Source: Bugula neritina
Taxonomy: Eukaryota; Animalia; Bryozoa
Direction of reading: 5' to 3'
NCBI GenBank assembly: GCA_964035545.1
Contig: OZ037766.1
Location: 13,444,722 to 13,508,721, forward strand
DNA length: 64,000 nucleotides
Position numbers and translations under genes: made by a program. Each line of letters starts with the position of its first letter. Positions within the stretch are counted from its first letter, which is position 1. The notes below the pieces were generated by a model. The model saw nothing but the letters and a program-made list of their open reading frames with translations, made no database searches and had not been told where the DNA came from. This document shows, one piece after another, positions 33,027 through 53,355 of the stretch.

Positions 33027-36000
33027 ATGTGGATTATCCAAGTCGTAGCCTGTGTTTCTGTTGTCCTACTTTCATATACTGAAGCTCAAAGTGAGTAAAC
33101 ACATAACTGTATTAGACAGGAATATTTTTCATTTTCAATAGCCCTAAATTTCTCTTTGGTCACAATCATTTTCAAAAGTTATTAAAGTTTTACTGTGAAA
33201 CAAGCCCTATGTTTTGTCTATAGAAGACCTTTTATTTTATTAATTTTTTTGGGAAATAAAGCATGCATAGGCTGTTGTTTTAAAAGAAGACAATGCTGAA
33301 CTTTTGTGTATATAATATAATATCTTAAATTATATGACATCTTGTCTCGTAACTGCATTGCATTTGTAATTACCTTTGTTACACATTTTGACATTGAGGG
33401 TGTTAAATTTGTGCATACAACTCCAAATTGACTATAATCCAACTAAAAAGCCACATATTCCACAAAGGGATGCACAATTACACACTCAAACTGTTTCATT
33501 TATGGCATCTACTTGGCTCGATATATGTATCGGTGATTTCTTTTCCACTTTTAGCTGATATGTTTAAACTTTTTTGCTCAACTAGCTGTAGTGTTCTAAT
33601 TTTTATTTTGTACTCAGAAAATCTATTCACGTCTAATTCGAAGACCTTACGAAAAATTTTGTAATGAATTTTGATTTATTTTTGGGGCAAATTCGTGCGT
33701 TTTATTGAAGCAGAACTTTTTTGAGCAAGTAATGATGAAATATTGCTGAGCTGTAGAGTAGGTAACAGTAGAGGTGTAGAGGGTATTTTTAAAACTTTGG
33801 TAAATCACTCACTGCTACGTGGAGGAGGAGGAGGGGGCGTAAAGCTCCATCCTTTGTTTCGAGATCTGTTTATTATTAAAAGACGACTATGCCTAGCTTT
33901 TATTAAAAATCAAATTCAAAGCACTCTTACAAACTAAAGTATTCTATTCAAGATTGGGCTATTGTTAGGATACTTGTGGAATTTGCTACATTGTTCTATT
34001 GATATGTTCCGGCCATGATTAAACTTTTCATTTGCTTGCTTTTTCTTCACATTTTTTGTAATTGAAGTAAATAACATGCCGGTAGTAGTAGGGTGTGAAC
34101 CCTACAGTATCTGCATTGGGTTTTAGCAGGGTTGGTATAGGAGTCCCCCCCCCCCTATACTGCTAAAGGAATTGCTGCTATAAAAGTTCAAACTTGTAAC
34201 TTGTTTTTTTCTCATTAAATAATATGTAGCTAAAATAATAGAATTATGTAATTGTGTGCAATTATATTTTATTGTATTATATAAAAGAATTTTCCGCTGT
34301 TCTTAAATACACCTTATACATTATAGTAGAAGCAAATCGGTTTAAGAAATGTCACTGAAACATCCTATTCTCTTAATGTAATGCTCTTTTAGGTTCTACC
34401 TGGACAATACCTCCTGGTACAGAGTTCATAGGTAACAACCTGACCACGAGAGACTTCCCTTCGTATGAAACTGGTGTGAAAGAGACCAACACAACATACG
34501 TGGATTTCAGATCCAGATTAAGAACAGGATTACTTACGGAGTTTCAGTATTATGTACAAATAGATAATCCAATCACCTTTGGGGATGTCTATGTTAGGTT
34601 TCAGGTGTGGCGAGTAGTGAGTACTAGTTATGTAGGTGGGACCCCTACTAACTATACTGTTGCCCTGGAGTATGAACAGCGAGAGCTGCTTGGAAGGGAT
34701 CCAGGAGTTTACACTGTAAGATATTTTAAATTCTACTTGTATTCAGCTGTGAAAAGAAGAGTAGAAACTTGCCATATCAACATATTACTTTATTAACTCA
34801 GTTTTGCTTGTGAATTAGTCAATGGTGTTAATTTTTTCATACCTTCTACAGGAAACTAGGTTTTAAAGTATGACTTGGGCTATCCTGATGTATTGTAGAA
34901 TTATTAGAGATACAAGTATTTCAACTTTATCATTCTGTGACATCTTAAATGCAGCCTTGGAAAACTTGGGAAAATTGATGGTTTATTGCAGATAATGAGC
35001 TATTATATGCCGTACTCGTATAGACTGTTCCACTATAAATTCTACCCAAGTATATATTTCATGACCTATTTAGCTGAAAATTTACAATAGCAATTTCTAT
35101 TTTCATCTTCTTTTAAAGAGAAAATTATTTTTTATGCACATAATTAAAAGAACCTTTTTTTCTCAGCTCCTATTCTCTGATTATTATAATATAAAATTTA
35201 AAGACCCACCAGTTGTTGCAGTTTTAATTTCTCAGTTGCCTGCAATATCCTTGCTGCATGTTTAGGTTTCACAATACATTGTGTGTTTTAGGTGGATATT
35301 GCTGACAGGCCCCTAGTTGAAGCCGGCTGGGTTTTGGGATTTGCTGTTGAGGCTCCAACCCTACCATTTTCATTCAACTATTACACCAGTACAGATGACA
35401 CTGAGGAGGCTGTGATAGACTTGAACCTGACACCTGGAACCTACACTGTCGGTTCTGAACAACAAGCTTTCGTTTTATATAGCGAAAGAGTGCAATACTC
35501 CTATGGTGCAGTCATTGATCCATGTAAGTAATAATGTCCGAAGAGTATGTTACTGTAATGCTTACCTGCATGTATCCTTACACTGTTTAAGCACCAAGGC
35601 TAGAATACAAGTTCTCAGACTAACCCTGTAGAGAAAAATGACAGCTAACTTTAATCAGTTCAAGCAGCCATTTCCATGCACAGTTTTGACATATTATTGT
35701 AATGATTTTTACATAGGCACACTAAGCCGTTTCTGTTTTGATACTAGTTAGTGCAAAACTATGTTCATTTTCAGTTTTAGTCAAACTTGTACAGATTTTT
35801 GTTCAAATAATAATTTATACAAAAAAGTTAGTGTTTTGTTGCTTACTTTAAAATGCAAGGAAACTTTTAAAGCATCTAAATCTGATGTTAATCTTTATCC
35901 AACAAGTTAGTAAGCCTTAGTCATTATCTGCTTGATTAGAACCTTAGTCTAAAAAATTGGGTCTTATCAAATACAGTGCTGTTCACATTGAGATGCTGCG

Positions 36001-51000: not shown

Positions 51001-53355
51001 GAGTGTGTAGTAAATAATGGCGGCTGTGAGCACGTGTGTGAAGATACAGTTGGATCATACGTTTGTTCATGTGACCCTGGATATGCTCTCTCAGATAACC
51101 AGTTTTCCTGTGAAGGTTAGATATTTTCTATTGATTCAATCTTCAACTCTCTCTATAGGCTATTTTATATATAAATTATAATTACATGAAGTTTCATGTA
51201 CCTCTATTTTTCTACTATTGCTTTCTAACTCTAGCAAGTGCTGACAACTTCATGTCACAGTATAACTGCTGCCCCGTAGAATTATAAACGCAAAACCTAC
51301 TCCTATATAAGTACAAGTAGCAAATTCAATTTTAACTGTTTAATGTATAAGTTAAGTATGGTGTAGTAATATTACTCCTGTGCATTTATGTTCCAAGTTT
51401 CTAAATTTACATTTAATGGTAGTTGTATAATTTAATGGCCTCATTGTAATTCTTTGTTGTATCAAAAGTAGATTCATTTTTTTCTCTTAAGATTATATTT
51501 GTTAAAATTTTGACCTTAATACTTTTATTCTGGTAGACCTACGGGTCTTCCAAATTATTTTACACATCTTAGCAGCTTTTAAAATACTCGGCAATTTGAT
51601 AAGAACTTGATATAACTATTGTAACTGTTTAGAGTTGAACTAATATTGTAATTTATATATATGGCTTTAGATATCAATGAATGTCAAGACTACAACGTAC
51701 ACGGCTGTGAAGGATCATGTGTGAATCTCATTGGAGGATATTACTGTCAATGTCCTGAGCATCAACAACTAGTAGTTGCCAACCCTATTAACGTCTACTC
51801 TGAAGAAATACCAGAATCTTCATGCAGTGGATACCCGACTACTCATTTTGATACTTATGTTTGTGCCAATCCTGATCCCAATGGCTATGGTTTTGAAGAA
51901 TGTACATGTATTGAAGATGGTGGTGGCACAAAGCTGGTGGCCAACACTGGTGGCTGCTTAGGTTGGGCTCACATGTAGTCTTTTTAAAGTGTAGCTGAAA
52001 TTCGTACAGTATATAAATTATTAAACATTTTTTATATCTTGGCGGTGCTATTGCCGATTCAATTGTCATGTTTATTATTGGTTATTACTTTCAGCTTATT
52101 TCCGTGAATATTGAGCACAGCTACAATTAATTTTTATGCAAATAATGCTCAATAACTATTATTGGTTGACAACAATATCATGTTCTATATGCATCTGTTA
52201 TGTAACTTATATTACTATAAACTGTTATTGCTTTATTAAACTGATGACTTGCTGATTTCCTTTTCAATCTAGTTCTGAAATTACCTGCAGTGTTGAATGG
52301 TAGATAGAGCTGTTAAATACTGCTGAATTGTTTGTAGAATCAAATCTGAAATGTGGTTACCACTATGGCTACTTCTACACCTGTAATTGTTATGTGACTG
52401 TGGTAAACACAACAACTAACGCTATTATAAACTCAACAATACTCACACTAAATGGCACCTCGTGTGAGAACAGAGACGAATGCTCAGTTAACAATGGTGG
52501 ATGTGAACAAGAGTGCAACGATTTGCCCAATGGATTCGAGTGCAGCTGCTTCGCACCAACAGACCCCTTGTACCCACCTGCATGGACTTTATCTGACAAC
52601 GGATTTGATTGCTTAGGTATATTAATACTTTATGTCCTATAATGTTTTCTTGCAACTTGACTTGCATATATAAATATATACTATACCAAAAGTTTTTCTC
52701 GCATATTTCACTTGTTCACTTGCTGTCTGCAAACCTTTAAATAATTCAAGATTTGCCGAGACACTGGCCGTATTGTAATGACAGAATATTATTAATATTT
52801 GTTGTACAGACATCGATGAATGCACAGTTAATGCAACATGGATAGAAGCCACCTGTACTGACCCAAATGCTTGTACCAACACCCCGGGATCTTTTGACTG
52901 TACGATTGTGTTACTGGCTCAAGGAAAGCTTGGTGAACAGGCTGCAAGCACTGGTATATATACAAATATTAATTTTTCAGTTATTGCTAAGATTTTCTTC
53001 AATAGGTATTCATGATTAATTTAAATATCATTTGAAATTTGCAAAGTTGTAAAGTGCCAGAAAAATTTTACTTTCACTAATATGCTTAAGTTTTCGTTAC
53101 TTGAATATTTTAAAAAACTTGTTTACAGGAAATGCAGCTGTATCATCATCTAACCTAACGATTGCCATGATTGGGTGGGCTGGAGCAATGACTCTGCTGG
53201 TTATTATAATTGTGGCAGTGGTATTAATCAAACGAAAGCGTCGCTCACACTCATCTGATTTAGATTCCACTGCATCAACTATTGATGAGCAAATAGCTCC
53301 TATGGAGGAAGGTATCACACTTGTGCATGAGCCGACTTCAAAAGTAATTACTTAA
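33027..53355 (+). CDS. Giant type I transmembrane collagen: signal peptide, N-terminal globular domain, about 1,284 Gly-X-Y triplets, cbEGF-like repeats, TM, short cytoplasmic tail (about 4,494 aa)
   Basis: Predicted exons: 33027-33090, 34393-34715, 35292-35523, 36559-36795, 36994-39846, 40063-40809, 41023-41220, 41568-42044, 42487-44160, 44274-45929, 46140-46391, 46548-47618, 47794-49242, 49392-50309, 50480-50650, 50894-51115, 51671-51961, 52338-52616, 52810-52953, 53129-53355. Total 13,485 nt, in frame, all GT-AG. Signal [20 protein letters not shown]; [25 protein letters not shown] followed by KRKRR. Confidence 0.9.
36567..50514 (+). repeat. Collagen triple-helix coding region (Gly-X-Y)n over 12 exons
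   Basis: GGN codon every 9 nt; dominant triplets [24 protein letters not shown]. Confidence 0.95.
50515..52953 (+). other. Calcium-binding EGF-like domain array of the collagen gene (5 units)
   Basis: [27 protein letters not shown]; [31 protein letters not shown]; [28 protein letters not shown]; [27 protein letters not shown]; [22 protein letters not shown]. Confidence 0.9.

Follow-up and report, generated by a model that had tools for sequence, protein, structure and literature searches.

How could a collagen helix more than a micron long be registered and stabilized without the two aids on which long unbroken helices normally rely, a soluble trimerization domain and hydroxyproline? The question is raised by a collagen gene on chromosome 2 of the bryozoan Bugula neritina (~13.478-13.498 Mb), found at positions 33027-53355 (+ strand) of a 64,000-nucleotide (nt) stretch of contig OZ037766.1 (GenBank assembly GCA_964035545.1). 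That whole stretch is referred to here as the window, and the coordinates of exons and neighboring genes are window positions. The predicted product combines a 1,279-triplet helix and a topology opposite to that of human membrane collagens with no known trimerization domain and near-zero proline at Y positions. On balance, we consider it probable that the locus is one expressed gene, that it encodes a type I membrane collagen belonging with two paralogues to an undescribed, probably bryozoan family, and that the product serves as a homotrimeric tether or strut. As such, three questions can be put to a sequence-defined test: whether natural collagen trimers can take their register from a membrane anchor, whether glycosylated threonine can keep a micron-long helix stable, and which genes lie behind the giant cuticle collagens of worms.

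Results

A 20-exon gene encodes a predicted type I membrane collagen

The initial annotation had proposed one spliced open reading frame of about 4,494 amino acids (aa), and the model that we rebuilt from splice signals reproduced it exactly, with 20 exons, GT-AG at every intron, 13,485 nt of coding sequence, 4,494 aa and no internal stop. The joined model was used for counting and comparison, while database searches were run one exon at a time. In order, the protein comprises a signal peptide (aa 1-21), a cysteine-free head (aa 22-209), a Gly-X-Y region (aa 210-4062), a cysteine-rich block, a transmembrane (TM) helix (aa ~4431-4453), a cluster of basic residues and a tail of 41 aa. Hydropathy maxima are confined to aa 1-20 and ~4431-4453, in agreement with the signal peptide, C-terminal TM helix, tail of ~40 aa and type I topology that had been predicted.

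All exons lie on the + strand. Exon 1 (33027..33090) carries the start codon and the hydrophobic signal peptide; it is 91% identical to its counterpart in a sibling genome (locus L031), and a signal-like first exon is also present in a chromosome-1 paralogue, C1+. The triple helix begins in exon 4 (36559..36795), the site of its sole flaw, one extra glycine between the Gly-X-Y tracts at aa 210-224 and aa 226-4062. Our recount gave the same 1,284 triplets as before, 1,279 of them unbroken, and at 0.286-0.29 nm per residue the 3,853 residues compute to a length of 1.10-1.12 μm, consistent with the ~1.1 μm rod first estimated. Exons 5-14 (36994..50309) encode only unbroken helix, of 317, 83, 22, 53, 186, 184, 28, 119, 161 and 102 triplets, respectively. 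Collagen exons 5-15 are in phase 1 throughout and have lengths in multiples of 9 nt, the longest being 2,853 nt; the helix introns span 113-442 nt, and both the frame and the glycine period are maintained through each junction.

Exon 15 (50480..50650) contains the final four triplets and the first calcium-binding EGF-like unit (cbEGF1). Exons 16-19 (50894-51115, 51671-51961, 52338-52616 and 52810-52953) continue with 4-Cys module A, cbEGF2, cbEGF3, 4-Cys modules B and C, cbEGF4, a truncated cbEGF5 and a stalk of ~28 aa. Pfam returned EGF_CA/FXa_inhibition matches in exons 15-19, whose 40 cysteines are distributed over four complete cbEGF units, another cbEGF that has only four, and three extra 4-Cys modules; the five units originally listed were therefore right for four and incomplete for the remainder. 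A structural model of a paralogue's matching EGF exon resembles the EGF pairs of LDLR/LRP2. Exon 20 (53129..53355) encodes the TM helix (~53161-53229), a basic stop-transfer cluster and the 41-aa cytosolic tail, and ends with the stop codon.

Pfam searches of the exons bore out the lack of COLFI, C1q and type IV NC1 domains. No C-terminal exon of the gene matched COLFI, and the COLFI matches listed for the genome sit at other loci. No coiled coil was evident by inspection. We found no furin site in the ectodomain; the lone R-x-x-R sits on the cytosolic side.

The 3′ collagen exons are spliced to the EGF and TM exons

In RNA contigs from four studies the predicted introns are missing and collagen exons are joined to EGF/TM exons; we regard these contigs as transcripts because the introns have been removed precisely. 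The RNA haplotype is ~95-98% identical to the genome. One contig of 5,277 nt contains exons 13-20 in order together with 952 nt more upstream, and the exon 14-15 junction is present in all four RNA runs. The gene is expressed, and its 3′ collagen exons are spliced to its EGF/TM exons. Separate collagen and EGF/TM genes are ruled out for exons 13-20 by this RNA and by exon 15, in which both domain types are fused, so the earlier claim of one gene and one mRNA holds for these exons. At 52015-52347, one RNA contig of low depth (3.5, in run X1) runs through the 3′ part of intron 17 and on into exon 18; it may reflect a retained intron or a minor isoform.

An assembly artefact, or a collapsed or expanded tandem repeat, was rejected: the top self-matches of the helix reach ~62% DNA identity, and an independent assembly agrees. 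In that assembly, the sibling genome of L031 (~96% nt identity), exons 4-8 are equal in length to those of the window gene, exon 9 is one triplet shorter, and exon 4 has the identical extra glycine. Across 475 triplets we observed no glycine change (nonsynonymous divergence, dN, of 0), with a dN of 0.025 at X and 0.018 at Y and a synonymous divergence (dS) of 0.14. At the level of the coding sequence, the glycine positions and the helix register are under purifying selection.

Paralogues and orthologues point to a constrained helix length

We searched 216.0 Mb of genome for relatives with four queries, namely exons 2, 3 and 18 and a head profile built from 12 sequences. Every query returned the same three loci and none further: the window gene and, on chromosome 1, the convergent pair C1+ (30.179-30.194 Mb, + strand) and C1- (30.249-30.230 Mb, - strand), both within loci L004-L011. 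Each has the head-helix-EGF-TM order of the window gene within 14-20 kb, ~990 triplets and a similar tail, and the two share matched collagen exon lengths (231, 57, 65, 41, 185, ~280 and ~106 triplets). Their helices are Pro/Asp-rich at Y, unlike that of the Thr-rich window gene. The EGF3 region of C1- is also shortened, and its helix shows about ten imperfections, located near the C-terminal third. The two genes are candidate heterotrimer partners of each other. A fourth family candidate, on chromosome 6, was rejected because it lacks collagen and is a fibrillin-like EGF protein.

Outside Bugula, head and EGF exons were present in ENA/Logan marine samples at 33-61% identity, and we infer that these samples are probably other bryozoans. 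The architecture thus recurs, in two paralogues of the same genome and in orthologues elsewhere. Three loci (L033, L049 and L050) are orthologues of the window gene by synteny, having the SEFIR gene upstream as in the window, with the adenylyl cyclase gene as well in L033; L038 and L040 share the downstream gene of C1+. The head is ~40% identical between the window gene and its two paralogues, and the head tree splits the window clade from the chromosome-1 clade (support 97/97). In the EGF-block trees no supported branch includes the window row, and orthology came from synteny for three locus groups.

C1+ and L040 align in register across 900 triplets at 23-48% X/Y identity, with an offset of 0 best in 16 of 17 windows of that alignment, and have two Gly-to-Ala positions in common. 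L037 and L046 preserve the 185/280/106 exons to within one triplet. Since register is kept over 900 triplets and exon lengths are kept too, helix length is under strong constraint; that the paralogue helices have stayed free of indels between species suggests a molecular ruler in a bryozoan tissue. In the window gene, exons 12+13 (280 triplets) and 14+15 (106 triplets) equal the family's last two exons, placing introns 106 and 386 triplets from the EGF end, and its comparison with L037 and L046 gave the best of ~1,000 diagonals at exactly the family register (z 2.8-3.5, a weak signal). N-terminal of these 386 triplets, the window helix is unrelated in sequence to the paralogues, and it is ~294 triplets longer. 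The helix of the window gene's distant orthologues was absent from every contig examined.

The predicted TM helix and basic cluster are kept in both paralogues and in L036, L038, L040 and L051, showing that the TM segment is conserved in the family. A cytosolic D-(L/I/V)-(D/E)-S motif is likewise kept in both paralogues, L038 and L040, is partial in L051 and is missing in L036; outside this acidic motif the family tails (~15-41 aa) are divergent. A divergent family member, L052 (ERZ4903289), has an EGF block that seems to end after cbEGF3, and is possibly a truncated or secreted form.

The helix is rich in threonine and poor in Y-position proline

Threonine occupies 52.7% of Y positions, lysine 16.4% and proline 1.3%, and threonine makes up 18.2% of the whole helix. 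The core is the most Thr-rich part (Y=Thr 55-72% in the middle, peaking at 72%), and the ends are Lys/acid-rich. Hydroxyproline cannot stabilize this chain, and its stability must come from another source, because only 1.3% of Y positions are proline. A Y-position lysine is followed by Gly-Asp/Glu in 53% of cases vs 18% expected (~3-fold); Lys-Gly-Asp/Glu is a known salt-bridge motif in collagen. The cuticle collagen of Riftia has a helix of ~1.5 μm and a threonine content of ~18-20%, near that of the window helix. In Riftia cuticle collagen, stability comes from glycosylated threonine (PMC11766948).

A compositional search with collagen exon 5 yielded look-alikes only (unnamed or bacterial/viral collagen-like proteins and two fibrillar collagens of fish); not one of these had EGF domains or was in register, and the longest unbroken run among 120 such look-alikes was 193 triplets.

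The head is an orphan domain

Exons 2-3 (34393-34715 and 35292-35523) encode the head, a beta-rich domain of ~188 aa. It gave no significant match in Pfam (single sequence and 12-member), PDB sequences, ESM Atlas features, Foldseek, VIA-align or an Atlas shape search. A model of exon 2, a partial domain with a predicted local distance difference test (pLDDT) score of 61, has a weak likeness to CBM/galactose-binding sandwiches (Z<=3.4). Against 1.84 billion representatives, the head exon matched no named annelid, mollusc or brachiopod, in a type of search that remote homologues escape, the paralogues themselves being only ~40% identical. The EGF block likewise had no named match in these three phyla, in a search blind to full-length models or remote homology.

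A membrane anchor may register the trimer

Long collagen chains require a register-setting device (PMC13138384). The EGF/TM end is the best candidate for this role, because the protein has no COLFI, NC1, C1q or evident coiled coil and because this end is conserved. We propose that three chains would be held in the endoplasmic reticulum membrane via their C-terminal TM helices, and that the membrane-proximal EGF block and TM would stand in for the C-propeptide and set the register. The helix would then zip from C to N to give a ~1.1 μm rod capped by three beta-sandwich heads. Bulleid et al. reportedly found in 1997 that a TM segment can substitute for the C-propeptide in an engineered procollagen; the window protein would be the natural version of that swap. 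The stabilizers would most likely be O-glycosylated Y-position threonines, as described for Riftia cuticle collagen, plus Lys-Gly-Asp/Glu salt bridges.

We favor a homotrimer because the window chain is ~294 triplets longer than its paralogues, and the two ~990-triplet chromosome-1 chains could pair together. The product would most likely be structural: a long tether or strut, non-banded and fixed in length, running from the epithelial surface to the extracellular or cuticular matrix. A charge/hydrophobe stagger scan, run without a positive control, found no preferred stagger; nothing rose over the shuffled maximum, with z<=0.8 for multiples of 234 residues, the D-stagger of fibrillar collagens. 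As the ectodomain has no furin site, the rod would either stay on the membrane or be cut loose at the short stalk by some non-furin protease.

Several points weigh against this proposal. RNA junction evidence is limited to exons 13-20, and the trimer state, glycosylation, folding direction and tissue are all deduced from genes and transcripts. The head could equally be the trimerization domain. Thr-richness and the 1,284-triplet length were seen only in B. neritina and one sibling genome. The stagger scan had no positive control. Lastly, hornerid bryozoan cuticles are 120-300 nm thick (PMC9303787), so that a 1.1 μm rod would have to lie flat, not upright, in such a cuticle.

Could the protein instead be a homologue of the annelid/vestimentiferan giant cuticle collagens that is shed, so that the TM would act as a biosynthetic anchor only and the rod set free would be the sort of molecule purified from the cuticle of Riftia and Alvinella? 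The threonine content near that of Riftia and the short unstructured stalk ahead of the TM favor this idea. The long helix, terminal globule and Thr-dominated Y positions also match the annelid cuticle collagen description (PMC11766948). However, no named annelid, mollusc or brachiopod was among the head or EGF-block matches, the Pro/Asp-rich paralogues suggest that Thr-richness may be a convergence in the Bugula lineage, and type II giant collagens with furin sites in the same genome compete as candidates. We therefore judge a shed cuticle collagen unlikely. The suggestion in the initial annotation that this is the gene type behind the annelid proteins stands as a likeness of composition (Thr at 53% of Y) and falls short as homology. 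A wider version, also doubtful, is that lophotrochozoans have a class of giant type I membrane collagens, first seen here at the gene level, whose folding starts at a C-terminal EGF/TM anchor in place of a propeptide, and that its Thr-rich member is truly homologous to the micron-long, Thr-glycosylated cuticle collagens of Riftia and other annelids.

The genome has exactly three paralogues, the C-terminal 386 triplets retain the family register, and any of exons 5-14 could be skipped with frame and glycine period intact, which would allow the window chain to join the two chromosome-1 chains in a heterotrimer, either by skipping exons down to ~990 triplets or by leaving an unpaired overhang. 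We consider this quite improbable, since the full chain is ~294 triplets longer with no single exon or contiguous block of that length, its composition is sharply different, and in-register similarity ends at 386 triplets. Sums of skipped exons that come to ~990 triplets were set aside as numerology. Alternatively, a very long stalk could carry a receptor or adhesion molecule of the cell surface, with a lectin-like head for microbes, food or substrate and a signaling or endocytic tail, an arrangement that would fit the type I topology, the LDLR-like cbEGF pairs, the conserved cytosolic motif and the partial head model, which leans weakly CBM-like. The head fold match is, however, far under significance, the tails are short and mostly divergent, and a strictly conserved helix length at the micron scale fits a structural ruler better, so that we give a receptor little credence. 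Finally, the limited 5′ reach of the RNA evidence and four AATAAA hexamers in intron 7 could mean that the head and 5′ collagen exons are a separate gene or isoform and the membrane protein is shorter. This is very improbable: the helix introns are short and the frame and glycine period unbroken across them, both paralogues have the same order in 14-20 kb, there is no second signal peptide or TM, and one RNA contig reaches 952 nt 5′ of exon 13. Overall, we retain the single-gene, membrane-anchored homotrimer.

Neighboring genes and other collagens in the genome

Upstream of the collagen gene lie an N-terminal exon of an adenylyl cyclase (11332-12135, - strand) and an IL-17-receptor-like gene with a TM and a SEFIR domain (21145-26834, + strand), in an order that is kept beside the head exon in the distant L033. 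An SLC22/MFS-like transporter (54570-59110, - strand) is convergent with the collagen 3′ end; it was recognized from its translations, Pfam being silent on the two short exons tried. Low-complexity hexamer-like repeats at 14203-14627 and 63474-63683 produce spurious open reading frames, and a reverse-transcriptase-like fragment is found at 62550-62906 (- strand).

Chromosome 4 carries tandem type II giant collagens at 17.045-17.057 and 17.069-17.079 Mb (L014-L017). They have a short cytosolic N-terminus, a TM, a coiled-coil-like stretch, an RRKR furin site, short C-tails and single-exon helices of 13+1,128 and 18+964 triplets, and the pair are competing candidates for shed cuticle collagens. 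A collagen of ~450 triplets on chromosome 5 (7.023-7.030 Mb, - strand; L023-L024) has lysine at ~60% of Y and Gly-to-Ala substitutions. On chromosome 2 (33.065-33.085 Mb; L026-L028), a divergently oriented pair of 124-triplet collagen exons adjoins a collagen gene of ~250 triplets. On chromosome 8 (0.1-4.3 Mb), C-terminal exons of COLFI/fibrinogen-like type gave more than 80 matches; the array that they form is largely duplicated and is probably a FReD-type family that has expanded.

Comparison with known collagens

The window gene resembles fibrillar collagens in its long unbroken helix, its phase-conserved exons in 9-nt multiples and its probable C-to-N folding. It differs from them in its 1,284 vs ~338 triplets (nearly four times tendon collagen), its TM anchor, its low proline content and its exons of up to 2,853 nt. 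Hydroxyproline-free helices are also found in streptococcal Scl1/2 and Bacillus BclA; Scl presents an N-terminal head on a C-terminally anchored stalk, and BclA has Gly-X-Thr repeats. These bacterial proteins are much shorter, have no EGF domains and are unrelated.

With the membrane-associated collagens whose triple helices are interrupted (MACITs; collagens XIII, XXIII, XXV and COL-99) and collagen XVII, the window protein shares a triple-helical ectodomain anchored in the membrane. MACITs are type II proteins whose N-terminal part is cytosolic; they have a juxtamembrane coiled coil, are shed by furin and contain helices with breaks (PMC4678570), and human membrane collagenous proteins are type II without exception (PMC13138384). 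In contrast, the window protein is predicted to be type I (signal peptide, C-terminal TM), with 1,279 unbroken triplets and no ectodomain furin site. By this layout it is neither a MACIT nor a fibrillar collagen.

Annelid and vestimentiferan cuticle collagens share with it a very long helix, a globular end and threonine in Y instead of hydroxyproline (Gaill 1995, Mann 1996 via PMC11766948). They are known by protein chemistry and from a different phylum, and the likeness so far is one of composition. In the literature searched, neither a gene with EGF/TM for annelid cuticle collagens nor the cuticle-collagen genes themselves were described. Our head, EGF and helix searches named no annelid protein, by a method that misses full-length models and remote homology.

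The EGF collagens of Lingula, on the same lophophorate branch, likewise join a helix without COLFI to EGF domains of the same Pfam families. Lingula has 17 collagen-EGF genes (EGF_CA with collagen 22 times, FXa_inhibition 20); for the pearl oyster the corresponding counts are 7 and 6, respectively (Luo et al. 2015, PMC4595640). The four members in the Lingula shell proteome are secreted proteins of 774-1,548 aa and ~30% Gly, with no TM or head reported (PMC4595640), unlike the window protein, with 4,494 aa and a TM. Head, EGF and helix exon searches, which are blind to full-length models, returned no Lingula protein; some uncharacterized Lingula EGF collagens may be relatives. The domain architecture had been called unusual, and our literature search found no description of this gene family or of any family with the whole layout, while the pairing of collagen with cbEGF had already been counted in Lingula and pearl oyster. 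The pairing is therefore known, and what appears to be new here, as predicted from the gene, is a type I, micron-scale, Thr-rich EGF collagen.

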